Below are positions 8,637-61,131 of a stretch of DNA of 64,000 nucleotides, piece after piece. Below the pieces are notes generated by a model. It was not told the origin of the DNA and searched no databases. It saw only the letters and a list, made by a program, of their open reading frames with translations. The first letter of the stretch is position 1; the number at the start of each line of letters is the position of its first letter. Made by a program: the position numbers and the translations under genes. This stretch comes from Trichosphaerium sp. ATCC 40318. Lineage: Eukaryota; Protista; Tubulinea. Location: contig JALMLS010000120.1 in assembly GCA_038496445.1 (NCBI GenBank), positions 1-64,000 on the forward strand, written 5' to 3'.

Positions 8637-9283
8637 CAACACTGCTTCCAGAGCGAAAATAACTGGTTAAACGGACAATATTAGATAGAAAAATACAAAA
8701 ATGAAGTAGAACATTGTTTTCTATCTTTACAAATTAGGTCAATTTTTGATGTACTTTTGGAGTCATTAAAGTCGACTTAAGCAAAGTCATTTAGGTTGTC
8801 AAAAACTGGATAGAGCTAACTCACTAAAAGACGAAGACGCAACTTTCCTGTCATACACGCCTAACGCCAGCATTGCGAACTTGTCAGTGTATAGTATTTC
8901 TTCATAATTTTAATCGATTTTGATCCTACACGCTACATTATCTGGTGTGATATACAAACTCTGTTCAATCGAACATTTTATCGCTGAAGCTTGTATTTCA
9001 GAAAGCCATTCGCTATGGCTGTAGCTCTACAATATCCAAAATTGTGAGTTGTAAATAGAGGCGGTACTTAGTTCTTGCAAGATCTTACACTTTGATACTT
9101 CTGCCAAACACCTGTAGCAAACTTGAACGATACGGACAATATGTGTATAAGTATAGAATCCTATGTGTCAACCAAAACATGTTAAACAGCCGATAACAGA
9201 TTTCGTTGCTGAGGTTCTTAGCAGTTAAGCCGGACCACGACCTCTAACCACACATTGGTCTGCCGCGCTGTACATGCGTAACA

Positions 9284-10710
9284 ATGGAGGAAAAAGAATG
9301 CTGTTTGTCGCCTTTAGAGTCATTTCCACACGAGATTCTGGTGTTAATATGCCACAACCTTAATGTCGAGCATTTCCTTGCTCTTAGCGTAACTTCAAAA
9401 GAGTTTAACTAGTTTTCAGCCGACAATATTTTATGGCAGCGTCTTTACGCCCAAACCTTCATAACGGAACCTAGAGGTAGCGTTTAAAAGGAACAACACG
9501 TGATTTACAATAAACTATACAAGGTGACAACATTAAGGACGCTTTCATCTGCGAATGGAAGAACAAGGTACCGTTCTAACGAAAACCACAAAAATTCGTC
9601 ACTTCAAAGTACAAACATCATTTAACACACTTAGTTGCTGTTACTTAAAATTGACAGGTCCGTATGTCATGCTGACTTATACCTCTCATCTGGTTTTGCA
9701 GTTCTTCTTATGAACAAGACGATGTCATCAACTTACGTTCACCAATGTTGAAACTGTCTAAAAAGCAAAACAAGAAGTTAAAGTCATCGCACTACAGTAA
9801 CTCTATCTTTGCTTCCCAGTTTTTTCTTATTTTGTTTTCAAATCTGAAAAACAAGCACATGATTTACTTGTATTTAGATTAGATGCTGCTTTTTTGGATT
9901 AATAGCTTCAGGATGTGTAAGTTTGTCTAAAAGGAGATTTGTTACAAGCACAACAATATGGCGTGTTAAATCTTTTCAATAGTTTTCGACATGGTTTTTT
10001 TAAGCCACTTTATTTGACTGCTTACTCACTTTGCTTTATTTTTCTGTCTCTAACGAATATTTCCAAGACTTCTATAATATTAAGATATACGTACAATTCT
10101 TTTAGTGGTAAATACGATCCTACTATTGGCACGAATTCATACAAAAAAGCATCAATCAAAACTCTTTTGCAAAAACCATTACCCTTTGCTTATTTGTCAA
10201 TTAGAAGATACAATCCTTATATCTACCTTGAAAGGAGATTTTTATTCTTATATGGACATCACAGATACATCTGGTATGTTTAGGTACTGCGAGAGTTTCA
10301 CCATTTTATCATTTATTTTTTTGTAGTTTTGCGTCCGTGCATCTTGTTCGCCATTTTGATATATTTTTCCTTGTGTACTCCATAGCGCATAAACGTAGTT
10401 TTGAAGAGCTTTCATATTACAGATACGTTATCATGGGTACTACTCAGAGACATGTAGCCATTCTAGTACGTGTAGAAAATGTGTCTTTGCACATATTAGC
10501 AAAATGACTTTTTGTGTTCACATGTGATGTTAGGTGGCAAACAAGTCCGATTTAGAAGATGAAAGACAAGTATCATATGAAGAGGGAAAAGCGCTTGCGG
10601 AGGCATGGGGTATACCATTTGTAAGAGTGAGTTGTAAGACAGGAAAGAATATTCAAAATCTTTTCTCGCTTGCAGTTGACGAATACCTAGTTAAGGTGTT
10701 GGAACAATAA
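9284..10710 (+). pseudogene. F-box plus Ras-like GTPase fusion, multi-exon, with an in-frame TAG
   Basis: Exon 1 LESFPHEILVLICHNLNVEHFLALSVTSKEFN*FSADNILWQRLY (TAG at 9410-9412). Downstream YDPTIG, DITDTSG, LVYSI..RSFEE and VANKSDLEDERQVSYEEGKALAEAWGIPF; no CAAX. Confidence 0.75.
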
Positions 10711-48837: not shown

Positions 48838-48939
48838 AAAATAAAATAAAAAAGTCACAACTAGTCAAGATATCTTCGGCTAAACAAGTTTATTAACCGA
48901 ATAAAATTGTGCGTTTAAAGAGAAAACGAGATCAAACCT

Positions 48940-50421
48940 ATGGAAGCTAAGCGCAATCGTAAAGTAGTTATACCTGAGGGTGCATTGAATCCAATACATG
49001 TTCCAGAACTAGCTTGTAAGATATTTCAATATTGTACCAATGATACTCAACTAGCACTATCCCGTACTACTGTATGTTCAGAATACGTTGAGAACCCTGA
49101 AAAGTCACAAGCTCTCTTTAAGGGTTATAACATCAATGTATCGAAGCATATGGAGGTATTTGTAGATGCAACCCCTCAAATTCTCGAAGCACGTGAATGG
49201 AGAATGCAGTAAGTCGCCTCACAAGTGACTTGAGATACTATCCAGACTTGTTTCGTTACAGATTTGAAGAAGTAGATATCAATAAGAATCCCGGCTATGT
49301 ATAAGAATATAGCAGATAAGGCTTACAAGTTTTATATTCAAGTTAACTTCGAAAAGTAGCTGCACGGGATAAGTAATACACAAAAAAAAGTTCATTTTGT
49401 GTCTAGGTTCAAAGAACTGTTGGAAGGTGATGAGGAGTATGATAGTGATTATGAGGATTGTCGCGAGCAACGTCAAAGTATACTTCAGCATATTTCTGTA
49501 TTTGTTGAAGCTAAAGGAATACATGATAAGGAAATGAAAACTGTACATCCACCTCGGTTTTTATAGTTTGTTTTCAAACCCAAAAAAATTGATTGTTCTC
49601 TTAGAATTATCACAAAGTCGTATTTGGTCCTAAAAAGAATCCTCTCGCTTTAATTTCAGCGACAGGCGTATTAATACCATTTAACACAGCTAAATTAATG
49701 ATGAAATTACGCAAGTTACAGAAACAAAGGTCTGAAGGAATTTATGTCGAATTTCATGATACTCTCAGAGATGCTTTTTTGAAAAACCAGTTTACAAAGG
49801 TAGAGTCTAACGTCTGTGGTTCAATTTGGTTTATTTTAATGACTTGACTTCAGGGTGAAAAATTCGCTTATCCATTAGTGCAACAGTACACAGTTGCTGA
49901 ATTGAACAGTGGTAACCTTGACTTTCTGAAAGGTACATATATATTTTGTTTTCAAGTCACTTAAACTTGTTTGCTTTTAGGTGAAGATGCGATGATGTTG
50001 ACTACCTTAAACCGCCTCCAACTGACGGTAACTATAGCACCTATTATAGAAATAATTATGGACCACCCAAGACCTACACATGTTGGTATGTACATAGTAC
50101 AATACTTGCCACTCGCTTTTTTTTCCTCTTTTTTTCTTTGTTCCTGATTTTGACTCTTTTGTAGGAAGTAAATTCTACAAGCCTGCTTATACAGGCCAAG
50201 AAGAGGATTATAAAAGCATTGAAAAGTTCTTGGAAGAACTTGAAATGGAAGAAACTGATTTCTTTTGGCTTAAAGCAATGCCCAAAAAACTTATGTTAAT
50301 ACATGCAGAAGTAGATGTGTTTGATGATGAGATTGAGCGATACTTCAATCACACCTATAGAGCACATCCAATACTCATCGCTACAGTCAATGATAAAACA
50401 CTAATTAAACAGTGGAAATAA
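48940..50421 (+). CDS. Unknown multi-exon protein with an F-box-like N-terminus
   Basis: HVPELACKIFQYCTNDTQLALSRT; downstream exons splice in frame. Confidence 0.5.
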
Positions 50422-52853: not shown

Positions 52854-53037
52854 GTCGACTTCCATGTAAACGTTTCCGCCTCTGTGCGGACTTTATGTAA
52901 GCGAGAGGCAAAAAAGCCGAAAACTGTGCGAGTAAAAAGTTCTGTATATGACATGAAACTCGCACAATATTCGGCATTTTTGCCTCTCGCTTACATAAAG
53001 TCCACACAGAGGCGGAAACGTTTAAGTGGAATTCGAC
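52854..53037. repeat. 184-bp foldback (80-bp arms, 24-nt loop): MITE or hairpin RNA
   Basis: 52854-52933 is the reverse complement of 52958-53037 with about 7 mismatches. Confidence 0.9.
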
Positions 53038-53204
53038 TTATTGTCTGGCATTGGAAGTATTTGTTGACCGTACTCAAAAGATAGGAAGTTAAGCAATCTA
53101 TTGGTGTACCATACATTTATCAAACTCGAAAAGTAACAGACAGGCGTTATGAGTACAAGTAAATTTTAATAAGTTTGTTAGAATAATTACTTTCCAAGCA
53201 TTCT

Positions 53205-55528
53205 TTAATTTACAGTGTTGTTTAGTAATAGCTTGTTCGAATAGTATAGATTGATTGCAGTGTTATTTACGTTGATACCTGGGCACAGTGTAAAAATGTT
53301 GAAGGTTCTTTGGCAGGTTTTTTCCTTTTTTTTTTTCTACAAGAAAATCGTTAGAGCATGCTTGAAACTAATACAAAGAGTTTCTCAAGTAGTTCACAAT
53401 TCAAATATACTACCACTTATAGTATTCCCCAACATAAATTTGTCTAGAAAACTATACAGGACAATGTTGCTGACAGGAAAGCTGTCTAACAAGCCAATAC
53501 TTAAGGTGGCCAACTTGACTTATGTACGTTGTTTTCATACCTTGACTACTTATAATTAATGGTAACCCTTTCCTTCCTTTCATTACTATTGGATCACCTT
53601 TACCATCTACTTTTTTCTCAAATAGTATATCCTCAATGTTGCTATTGTTTAGGAGTATTTGATGGAACAGTTTGTAAAAGGCAATATCCAGCTTGATCCA
53701 TCCTGTATTGTCCATGTTTATTATCACTTTTCTGATATTCTTGGAATCATAAAGGGCCATATATACTATAAAGGGTCCAGGATTCATCGAGCTATTACCA
53801 CCAATGTGTAACACCTGAGTATCTGTATTCTCATGGAACAAATAATCACAAAAGTTCTTGCTATTCTTCAAAAAAAAGTAAGGTTGTCAAAATCTGGTAA
53901 CACGTCGCTAATACTCCAATATTAAATCGTACCAATACTAATCCTTTGATATTATTTTTACCATAGAAACTAAATTTATCTATTCGGGAAGCTGTTTGTA
54001 TTGCAGCATGATGATAAACCATAAACCTTAACAAGAAAAAAGTGAGAAAAAAATACATCTGAAGTCAAAACTCGATATCCGCTGGGGTACTTACGAGTTA
54101 ATTTTTTGAATATAGCGGTAGGCTCTCAACGCTGCTATATTTTTTGCCTCTCTTTTTTGTGTTGCCCAACCCTTGCGTACAATAGTTTTTACTTTTGTAG
54201 CGCACGTGATCTAAACAAACGCGGTTTTTTTTTTTGACTACTGATGATTGTTCTGTACCTTAGCTTTCCATAACTGTGGTCCTATTTGCTCTGAATCAAA
54301 TGTATAATTGTCAGATGCTTTCTTCCAAAACCTTGGAACTTATAAAGGGTCAATGCGTTAAAAAATAAGATAGATATTGAACAAACTTGTTACAAGCGAA
54401 AATATTAGAACCTTGGTACAGTGTATGCAACGCTTGAATTGGGTTTTTCCTTTCATCGCATCCCTTCAATATAAAGCAGTACATAGCCTGCCGATTTTTG
54501 AAGTTAGTTGTGTTATTTATCCTTTCTTAAATAGTGAACAAAACGCACGTGAGTTTTCCAATTTTTGTTGCTTAAGTTTTTTTTGTCAGCAAAATCTCTT
54601 TGTGATACCTCTTGCCACAGGTGCTAAACAAACGTTACCTTCTAGGAAATTACATCACAAATATAATGGTCATTTACCTCGGTGTCTATGACCATGTGTA
54701 GTTTCCTACTGGTCATAGAAAGTGAAACAATAGACGTAATGTCCATGTGTGGAACAATATAGAATTGCCACGTTTCTATCGGCATCTTCTCTGTTGTTGA
54801 TAGTCCAATCCACGCTTCTTCTTCCTTCTTGACCTCCAGATCTAAGAGGTGATCAAGTGCTAACTTGGCAAGCAAATGTTCGCAAATTTTTTTGGTTGAA
54901 GCTGCTTGATTTGATTTGATAACAACGTCATTAAACAAGGTAACTGTGGAGCAAAGACATTAGTTACAGATGAACCACGATTAAACACTAAGGCATCAAC
55001 AAGCTACAACAGCACGTACTTTGTCCTGTAAACGGAGATGAGCCAGAACAAGTGTATTGTGGAAGAGGTTGTTTAAGTTTCTGAAGGTATTCATTGAGTT
55101 TGCCTTTGTGGTTATCTGTACACGTGCTGACAAGTACAGGTTCTTCTAAAATACGTTCAGTTAATGTTTTACTCCTTCCTTCCTCATTTTCTGCAAAATT
55201 AGACGCATTTGACGGTATTTCAGAGGTGCAGAGGTGTTTTTCGCTAGAATCGTGGTTTTCCTCCTTTTTATCATTCTCTTTGCTCTGTAGCGAGGCCAGC
55301 GCTGTTTTGGCCGCGTTGTGTTCTGATTCTTTTTTCTTTGCTTTCGGATCACTCTCATACGTAGTCTCATTCACTTTTACAGTTGCCTATACTACAATAA
55401 ACCCATTGGAACGTTTTTCCTAAACGTACAATCCAAAGATCGTCTGTGCGTCTCTGAGCGGAATAAACTGGAAGTGGTACACCACAACGCTGGCAATGCT
55501 CTTGTAGTTTACTTTTCCAGGTCGCCAT
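53205..55528 (-). CDS. dsRBD-dsRBD-F-box-dsRBD-LRR-like protein, multi-exon; 3' end approximate
   Basis: WKSKLQEHCQ..PLPVY..KKKESEHNAAKTAL; HKGKLNEYLQK..PLPQY..TKKICEHLLAKLAL; MPIETWQFYIVPHMDITSIVSLSMTSRKL; NPIQALHTLYQ..GWATQKREAKNIAALRA. Confidence 0.78.
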
Positions 55529-55651
55529 AACGCCCTGTTATCCTTTTAGCCTCAGCTAGGAACATATATTCAAGTCAAGGTTGTTCTTTCAACCATATTT
55601 TGTTCCAAACAGAAATAACTGATAATCTCTGTTGTTTATACATTGTTTATT

Positions 55652-58600
55652 TTAATGTTTATAATGATTATAAAGTTTTACACCAACGTATGCTCCAAGT
55701 GATAATACAATAATAAGACTAAGATAGAAAACGTTAGAAGAGAAAAAAACTTATCAAAGCTGAAGTAAAAAAAAACAACAATATTTAACAAACACGTGCC
55801 CAATTATTATTGCTGCTATGAGCACACGATCAATTGTAGATTCTTTTCCTGGGATTTCAGGAGTTCCATTTACATCAAGAAGAAGCCTTCCCATACTATG
55901 ATTACCATCTATAACTGCTGAATTCTCGAATTCTAAAATTAAAGTAAAAATCAGTTTAAAAAATTCCATTGTTACGCACTCCACTCGGCCCAAAGGCGTC
56001 CGCCAACCAAGTATTTAGATACATCTAGCTTATTAACTTGTAGTCTAAAACCAATACTTTCATTTCCCACCATTTGTGGTATTGTAAGTGTCTGTTTAAT
56101 AGAGCCCTAAACTCAATTAGAAACGAAGGAAAAAATACTGTACATACCCCAATGTCAGATAGAGCGTTAAAATTAAAAACTTTCAACATCAAGTTCCATG
56201 GATATGTAGTCACATTTGTGACGGAAAACTAGTGCAAGAAAGGTAAGTAACAAACAAAAAAAACATATCTGCCAAATTTTCTTTGAAAATAAGAAAGAAA
56301 TGAGAATTTAAGTTTTTATCAACACTGTTTACCTTACTATCAACAACATCATAATGGAACATTGATTCGTTAACATTACTTCTACCTTTAATTTTAGGTA
56401 AATGACAGTTCACCTTGACCTCAAAATCAAGTACTGCGTCCTAAGCATCAAAAGCGTTAAAACACAATTTTTGGTATTTCAAAAAAAAAAAAGAACACTG
56501 CGTACCATGTCACATTCCAAGTCTGCTTTATCCCCATCAAGATGTATTTTATATTCTTCCAAGTATTCAAGTTCTCTAGAATCATGACACTCTATATACA
56601 AAGTAAGAGAGGCCACAAATCAGAGCAACGTGGTAAAAAGTCAGTTTTCATCCTAAAACTTACGTTTGTGCTGACTTGAAGTGACTGTTAAGCCACATGA
56701 AAACTGTCTAGGCTTCTTACACTTGGAACCTTCCTAATAAATCTATCAGTACCGTAAAAAATGTTTAAACCAGTAGGTGGCTGGCAGGTGAGTTGCCGTA
56801 CGTAATCAATTGGACAAATACAACCCTCGCGTGTTTGTGTTTGATAGCAAAAGGCTAAACAGTCACTGGTATGCTTCTGCCATACGCATTGGACACCACT
56901 ACGTCATCTGTATAAGAAAAAAGCCACGAGTAAATAAAACAATACCCTTTACAACCCAAATCAATCGTCGTGCAAGATGTATTCAGTATACTTTGGCCAA
57001 CACAAACAATCTACAAATAAAATATAAACATTGCAACACAATAAAACAAACGCTTCTGTACCTGAGATATTGCACAACCTTCTGGAATAGTTGGTGTAGT
57101 GAAAGGAACAAACGTATTTCCACATTGAAGCTAAAAAATATAAGCACGTAGAGATAACCTGTTACGCACTTGTGCAACTCTACAAAGCGTTCCATTATCA
57201 CCAATACGTATCGAATTATCTTGGCATATGACCTAAAAAGGGTTTAACACAAGTTGCTAAAAAACAAAGCTAAAATACCTCTTGAATGTTCCAACAAGAC
57301 GCAAGAGATTGGTTGAACTTATCAGCGTCTATACCACGATTAAGACCACAATCAATCTCAAGAAATATTAGTAATCAGTAACCTAACCCTACAAGTTTGT
57401 ACAGTCTTAAGCCTACAATCATTAGGCTTGCCAGCTTCGCAAGCAATTGTTTTATCCTACATAGAACGTAAACTTTTTCATGTTCTCCAATGTTGGCTTC
57501 AAACGAACGCACTTGTATCTCTGTACACCCAAGTAAGTTACCTTGGTCATTCGTCTTTGGACATTCTTTCTAATACAAAGTTTACAAACCAACACTCATA
57601 CTACAAAAAGCAAGAGTACCTTGTACCAAGTACATTGTTCATCAACATGAAGTTCTGGACAAGGCTTATCTCGAGTAACACAATCACTGCTGTCAGGTAC
57701 TTGGTCCTTTTCTACTACTTTGCCATCGCATACCATCTAATCAAATAAGCACTTGTAGGTATATAATTTTGAAGCACCTCTTGTGTACTACACCTATACT
57801 CCCATGCTTGATAACCAAATATTGTAAAATTATTATTACACCGGACTTGAGCAAAGCAACTATTGTTTGTATTGAAAACTATCTCTTTGAACCTTGTGGG
57901 ATCTGATACTTCTTCAATACCACAAAAAAACTAGGATTTGTTACAAATGACCGAAGGAGAAAGTCTCAGAATCGATTCTTTGACATTTGAACGGGTTTTT
58001 TTCCGTCAGAATTTCAGCGTACTTTTTCTATTTTACAATCATCTGTTGGGTATGTGTAATAAGACGTTAGGTCCTCAACACGCGTAAAGCAGTCTAAAGA
58101 GAGAACGGTACACTCGTCCAAATTAATATCGGCGATGTCGCTCTCTGTTCTATTTGTTACGTTTACCGTTACGCCGTTACAATCAAAGGCGTAAACAGTG
58201 CACCATTTGCCTGTACATTTGTCTACCTACATAAAAATGAATCTTTACCGTGTAAATGGCGTCAAGAAGGCGCGAATGTATAAAATTAGGCGTAATTGAA
58301 CATTTGGGAAAATAACACCTATTCTACGTACTTTGGAGGTGACATTTCCAATAATACCAATGCCATTACAAGGTTCTTCAACCTCAGTCGCGTTTTCCGC
58401 CGGTAAATCTTCTAAAGATCGCTTCCGTCGCGTGGAAAGTGTTTTTGGGGAATATGGAGCAGGAAAAAACACTTTTCTGGCTGTTGTAATTGTGGCATGT
58501 AACGATTCTACCATAGGGTTCACCTTCTCAGCGTAGACATTGTTTATAGTGTCTGACGGCCACCCTGTCGTGAAATAATCCAACACCGTCTTAAATTCGC

Positions 58601-58903: not shown

Positions 58904-61131
<2,228 letters not shown>

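Follow-up and report, generated by a model that had tools for sequence, protein, structure and literature searches.

A Trichosphaerium gene predicted to combine double-stranded RNA-binding domains with a divergent F-box-like segment

A series of minus-strand ORF pieces near one end of a 64,000-nt stretch of the Trichosphaerium sp. ATCC 40318 genome (contig JALMLS010000120.1, positions 1 to 64,000; the window) raises the question of whether a single protein can join double-stranded RNA-binding domains (dsRBDs) to an F-box and, if so, whether such a protein might couple dsRNA to ubiquitination. An earlier note on this DNA had proposed one gene for two dsRBDs, an internal F-box, a third dsRBD and a tail resembling leucine-rich repeats (LRRs). 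The gene model, the evidence for each domain, related genes in the same genome and the functions that the protein might have are considered in turn.

Gene model and transcription

The surrounding DNA is AT-rich and eukaryotic in character (GC ~0.33-0.42), and the gene region contains no long spanning ORF. Checking exon by exon gave a ten-exon coding region (Table 1) in which all nine introns are GT-AG and in frame. The extent originally given, 53205-55528, does hold one minus-strand gene, with the coding region itself running from 55528 to 53263. The predicted 523-residue product consists of dsRBD1, an acidic linker, a degenerate dsRBD2, a divergent F-box, dsRBD3 and an orphan alpha/beta tail, in that order.

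Table 1 Features of the predicted gene in the window.
Feature	Position in the window	Strand	Remarks
5' untranslated leader	55529-55563	-	X3 contig has loose end at 55563 beside template-switch adaptor
Coding region	55528-53263	-	10 exons; 523 codons plus TAA at 53265-53263; frames and splice sites checked for each exon
Exons 1-5	55528-55430, 55386-55020, 54943-54678, 54623-54549, 54487-54412	-	
Exons 6-10	54338-54259, 54210-54095, 54026-53933, 53865-53541, 53336-53263	-	
Intron 1 (predicted)	55429-55387	-	43 nt; GTACGT..AG; required for open frame
Intron 2 (predicted)	55019-54944	-	76 nt; GTACGT..AG; required for open frame
Intron 3	54677-54624	-	Splits F-box; cDNA-confirmed
dsRBD1	55288-55519	-	Pfam dsrm on both halves; split by predicted 43-nt intron 1
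dsRBD2 (probable)	54843-55110	-	Degenerate; split by predicted 76-nt intron 2
Divergent F-box (MP-x-E ... LW)	54606-54785	-	Split by cDNA-confirmed intron 3
dsRBD3 (probable)	54112-54445	-	Exons 5-7; introns 5 and 6 cDNA-confirmed; GPxx loop and KRxAK motif
Tail, ~165 residues	53263-54026	-	Exons 8-10; orphan alpha/beta domain with basic stretch at end
Start of 3' untranslated region in cDNA	53256-53262	-	X1 contig 1 runs to 53256

Contigs from four public RNA runs (X1-X4) were aligned to positions 53000-55800. Those of X3 and X4 carry SMART template-switch adaptor sequence and are therefore taken to derive from cDNA. Six splice joints are present in cDNA contigs (53336/53541, 53865/53933, 54026/54095, 54210/54259, 54338/54412 and 54623/54678) and a seventh, 54487/54549, was deduced from an 11-base loose end of a cDNA contig, so that seven of the nine splices (introns 3-9) are represented in cDNA contigs of two runs, one of them also in a third run (X1, X2 and X3 in all). 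These contigs chain exons 3-4, 4-7 and 7-10, which places the F-box, dsRBD3 and the tail on one transcript; exons 3-10 are thus a single gene and not the two separate genes that had been specified beforehand as evidence against the proposal. Transcripts of the gene were found in runs from three studies. The transcript start is likely at 55563, which leaves 35 bases before the ATG (55528), and one X4 contig extends to 55659.

dsRBD1 and dsRBD2 can be assembled only by removing introns 1 and 2, and these are spliced in none of the cDNA contigs that cover them (X3, X4). X3 record 10 and X4 records 11 and 12 read through them (window 54933-55659), and the same sample in which they are unspliced shows removal of downstream introns. 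Retention of introns 1 and 2, which may be the main state in the X3 and X4 samples, would end translation after 53 codons. Both introns are nevertheless taken as real because each parts two dsRBD halves lying in different frames and, for intron 1, because a 51-nt GTACGT..AG intron interrupts a paralog (see below) just behind the corresponding D-L-W-A/I, matching in codon and phase. The proposed order of two dsRBDs, F-box and dsRBD accordingly stands on cDNA for the F-box and dsRBD3, and depends on predicted introns 1 and 2 for dsRBD1 and dsRBD2. One of the unspliced contigs over the 5' third of the gene has the template-switch adaptor at 54933, oriented as for the start of a plus-strand RNA; retained introns, antisense transcription or an artefact of library preparation could account for these contigs.

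X2 contains a variant of the gene that departs from the window sequence at nine of the 275 bases compared in the acidic linker (55033-55307); four of the five changes listed alter the protein there, and the last splice is common to both forms. By its sequence, this variant is from a related or diverged strain, or a sister species, with the same gene, and it suggests that the acidic linker is fast-evolving.

Domains of the predicted protein

Domains were scored on single-exon pieces, with a cut-off of 23 bits for Pfam dsrm (PF00035). For dsRBD1, exon 1 matches dsrm profile positions 1-21 (E 0.024), while the whole of exon 2, with its best stretch on profile 34-66, reaches 35.7 bits (E 1.4e-8), above the cut-off, as is the 29.2 bits obtained in a six-frame search of the genome; its prediction as a dsRBD is solid. 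In dsRBD3 the second half, encoded by exon 7, corresponds to profile 36-65 (21.9 bits, E 2.6e-4) and falls below the cut-off because introns split the domain; a GP loop is contributed by exon 6 and a helix of the N-P-x-x-x-L type by exon 5. Alignment with Xlrbpa dsRBD2, R2D2, PKR and RDE-4 places QKREAK against the K-x-x-A-K of those proteins, which in Xlrbpa and R2D2 is the RNA-contact stretch, and the domain is a probable dsRBD. For dsRBD2, also intron-split, Pfam recognises the first half (profile 2-24) with 15.4 bits and E 0.029, below the cut-off, and the second half has no Pfam match, giving a weak match to the family's own helix-2 profile (hhalign P 0.008; 47% identity over 19 residues). 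Its length (~63 residues) and order of elements fit a dsRBD, and it is probably a degenerate one. Among the three dsRBDs originally proposed, therefore, dsRBD1 exceeds the family cut-off, dsRBD3 is probable and dsRBD2 is a degenerate form detected by Pfam in its first half alone.

The RNA-contact regions of dsRBDs are a Glu in helix 1, a GPxH loop and a KKxAK motif at the start of helix 2. In dsRBD3, GPQL and KREAK are present and the helix-1 Glu is absent. The helix-1 Glu and the KK pair occur in dsRBD1 as well as in dsRBD2, but these two domains lack the GPxH loop and have Glu in place of the last Lys of the motif; the KK-x-x-E pattern of dsRBD1 is that of the Pfam consensus and is kept in both paralog lineages, and dsRBD2 additionally lacks the Ala-Ala of helix 2. 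Judged by these losses of the GPxH loop and, in dsRBD2, of the helix-2 alanines, dsRBD1 and dsRBD2 may not bind RNA.

The F-box segment begins M-P-x-E, with Met-Pro for the canonical Leu-Pro and Leu where Trp is usual, and the next exon begins H-L-W-Q-E, the usual F-box ending. Against the Pfam F-box profile (PF00646/PF12937), residues 65-87 of exon 3 cover positions 15-37 with 15.6 bits (E 0.016), short of the cut-off of 20.5; this score comes from the exon 3 piece alone of a domain interrupted by intron 3. For closer comparison, 20 F-boxes from the same genome that pass the Pfam cut-off served as a reference set. An hhalign comparison of the segment plus paralog with this set, spanning 33 columns that begin at the conserved Pro, gave a probability of 79.7% (E 1.5e-5). 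An HMM built from the set finds this ORF at E 0.21 among 1,489 ORF pieces and two other F-box genes in the window at 1e-5 to 1e-6; its main value is that it also hits the corresponding segment of the paralogs, with E 0.065-0.084. All of the best 10 named ESM look-alikes of a 45-residue piece belong to the F-box family (top score 0.91), and a model of this piece (pLDDT 74) has two helices by DSSP. Foldseek returned no match for this very small model, exon 3 had no match among PDB sequences, and a direct protein search of its own genome with exon 3 found itself alone and no similar F-box. The internal F-box originally proposed is thus borne out by remote homology (hhalign and ESM) and falls short of the Pfam cut-off. 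The segment very probably has an F-box fold, and that it would still bind SKP1 is, from its sequence, somewhat probable.

The tail has no Pfam match, including none to any Pfam LRR at E up to 10. Exhaustive HMMER searches with the tail exon against 1.84 billion representatives, which do not include the protein itself, yielded no true relatives, and viral contigs and metagenomes scanned with the tail alignment contained none. Five HMMER matches were rejected as spurious, being bacterial WD40 or adhesin repeats with a short DG-x-GDPIV-x-KG stretch. The corresponding DG-K-GDPIV-M-KG of exon 9 (53575-53610) resembles a repeated motif of bacterial WD40-STAND proteins, the repetition of which produces misleading E-values (down to 5e-6 in the exhaustive search with exon 9). 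An AF2 model of exon 9 with the two paralogs (pLDDT 65) is beta-alpha-beta-alpha-beta, with strands ~28-33 residues apart. Shape searches with the tail (Foldseek PDB, VIA-align, ESM Atlas) gave generic alpha/beta matches and no clear fold, LRR proteins (a designed LRR, COI1, NLRP3, tropomodulin) ranking no higher than unrelated folds (Z ~5). The description of the tail as LRR-like was not upheld, given the lack of a Pfam LRR, the weak AF2 model and the lack of an LRR-specific fold match. Periodicity and weak ESM feature look-alikes that include LRR_6 clusters (0.90-0.92) are hints that the tail, as modeled, possibly contains a few RI-type repeats. The Trichosphaerium sp. genome has been described as having a mean intron size of 75 nt and as containing many putative giant-virus transfers, with F-box and MORN as the commonest domains (PMC10521059); the empty viral scan gives no support to a giant-virus origin of the tail, and the gene itself contains nine introns.

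Paralogs and the F-box repertoire

Two paralogous copies, 97% identical to each other, lie in opposite orientations ~40 kb apart on another contig (C14). They have dsRBD1, the F-box-like segment, dsRBD3 and the tail in the same order, without dsRBD2, and are ~46-50% identical to the window gene in domain cores and 46% identical in the tail. Helix 2 carries RKKEAE in their dsRBD1 and GKKAAR in their dsRBD3. The F-box segment is weaker still in the paralog: Pfam does not detect it, LP is missing and helix 3 is shorter; the LW that closes the F-box is kept across the intron in both lineages. That the domain order and the basic motifs of helix 2 have survived such divergence is an argument for constraint. 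The second copy has ~1.16 kb inserted in the tail exon (C14 ~506489-507646), after which similarity resumes, and from its sequence is probably a disrupted copy. Searches of the 1.84 billion representatives, viral contigs and metagenomes with the tail found no orthologues outside Trichosphaerium with which constraint could be tested.

At least 1,398 F-box candidate loci are present in 70 Mb of the genome, and all 150 of those scored pass the Pfam cut-off; genome-wide matches to dsrm at E 0.01 or better number five. SKP1 genes are also present, and the very large F-box repertoire implies an active SCF system. Within the window, ORF pieces at 9248-9409 and 48919-49209, both on the plus strand, weakly match the own-genome F-box HMM (E 0.017 and 0.085, respectively) and may be additional F-box exons.

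Possible functions of the protein

F-box proteins of SCF ligases (FBXL/FBXO, e.g. Skp2) are similar to the predicted protein in having a ~40-residue, three-helix F-box-like segment followed by possible substrate-holding domains. Here, however, the F-box occupies a central position, with a divergent sequence (MP for LP) and a score below the cut-off, and its partner domains are dsRBDs, which were found described for no F-box protein. The multi-dsRBD Dicer cofactors (Arabidopsis HYL1/DRB2/DRB3, Drosophila R2D2/Loquacious, C. elegans RDE-4, Xenopus Xlrbpa) likewise have two to three tandem dsRBDs, and among proteins of solved structure they come nearest to the dsRBD pieces; their helix-2 lysine motif is kept in dsRBD3, but none has an F-box or this tail, and the exon pieces resemble them weakly (E 0.002 to 0.4). 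Plant FBW2 and polerovirus P0 are F-box proteins that direct ARGONAUTE1 to degradation and have no dsRBD; the likeness to these is one of idea only, an F-box acting on RNA silencing, with no sequence relation. A full-text literature search found no description of an F-box and a dsRBD in one protein, in agreement with the original statement that no characterised protein is known to have this architecture. The combination is new, within two well-known families.

As the most likely mechanism, with a rough probability of 0.45, this lineage-restricted Trichosphaerium gene would encode a dsRBD-bearing SCF substrate receptor. The F-box would dock onto SKP1 of an SCF-type ubiquitin ligase; the lysine-rich helix-2 motif that dsRBD3 and probably also dsRBD1 retain would bring this ligase to dsRNA, or to RNA-protein particles containing dsRNA; and the tail and/or degenerate dsRBD2 would select the target for ubiquitination. 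Favoring such a receptor are the open ten-exon frame, the seven splices in cDNA, the three methods that detect the F-box, the dsrm matches in exons 1, 2 and 7 (one of them above the cut-off), the aligned RNA-contact motif of dsRBD3, the paralogs, the SKP1 genes and the F-box repertoire, while the divergent, sub-cut-off F-box, unspliced introns 1 and 2, the losses from the RNA-contact regions of dsRBD1 and dsRBD2, a tail with no recognisable substrate-binding fold and the lack of orthologues in other organisms weaken the case. From the domains we infer that the protein may have a role in RNA silencing or virus defence. A stronger version, in which the adaptor reads dsRNA directly and proteins on viral intermediates, retroelement RNPs or Dicer substrates are ubiquitinated, is distinctly unlikely; it would amount to a dsRNA-to-ubiquitin route for defence or control of silencing, invented in an amoeba heavily exposed to giant viruses.

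The closeness of the dsRBD pieces to plant DRB2/DRB3/HYL1 and fly R2D2, their nearest relatives of solved structure, and an F-box that is sub-threshold here and missed by Pfam in the paralog would also suit an ordinary Dicer-partner dsRNA-binding cofactor (HYL1/DRB, R2D2, Loquacious or RDE-4 type), the F-box being an eroded helical linker unconnected to SKP1 or a ligase. This appears rather unlikely, as three different methods converge on one stretch of 36 residues as an F-box, the own-genome HMM also picks out the corresponding stretch of the paralogs, and the closing LW persists across the intron in both lineages. If the F-box is accepted, the dsRBDs might instead be of type B, binding a dsRBD protein or Dicer-like enzyme for degradation, with RNA not the cue. 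Absence of the GPxH loop from dsRBD1 and dsRBD2 and of the dsRBD2 helix-2 alanines would be expected of such domains; retention of the GP loop and KRxAK motif by dsRBD3, and of the consensus KK-x-x-E of dsRBD1 in both paralog lineages, makes this quite improbable.

With so many F-box candidate loci in the genome, domain shuffling alone could yield a protein of this kind, and the gene might merely have been thrown up by unchecked shuffling of F-box exons and now be drifting, with scarcely any function or none and a mostly mis-spliced 5' end. Introns 1 and 2 unspliced in every covering contig, one paralog copy broken by a ~1.16 kb insertion, a linker with 9 changes per 275 bases in the copy from a related strain (four of five listed changes non-silent) and the failure to find relatives of the tail among protein representatives, viral contigs or metagenomes are all compatible with drift. 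A frame that is open across 523 codons and ten exons, domain cores ~46-50% identical to those of an old paralog with RNA-contact motifs intact, and transcripts in runs from three studies are not readily explained in this way, and we give drift little credence.

If the F-box of the proposed SCF receptor binds SKP1 and its dsRBDs bind duplex RNA, the protein would be an F-box receptor cued by RNA structure and not by a protein degron, and would provide a simple, testable link between dsRNA sensing and ubiquitin in a protist; we know of no F-box receptor for which RNA structure is the recruiting cue. This significance is tempered by the putative function and by the protein having been found so far in one organism. 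Given a very large F-box repertoire, capture of copies of binding domains may be a general route to new degradation adaptors. Elsewhere in the window, ORF pieces on the plus strand at 59488-60837 contain protein-kinase motifs (GxGxxG...AMK, then DWWSLG) and probably represent a spliced Ser/Thr kinase gene ~4 kb upstream of the dsRBD/F-box gene, on the opposite strand.
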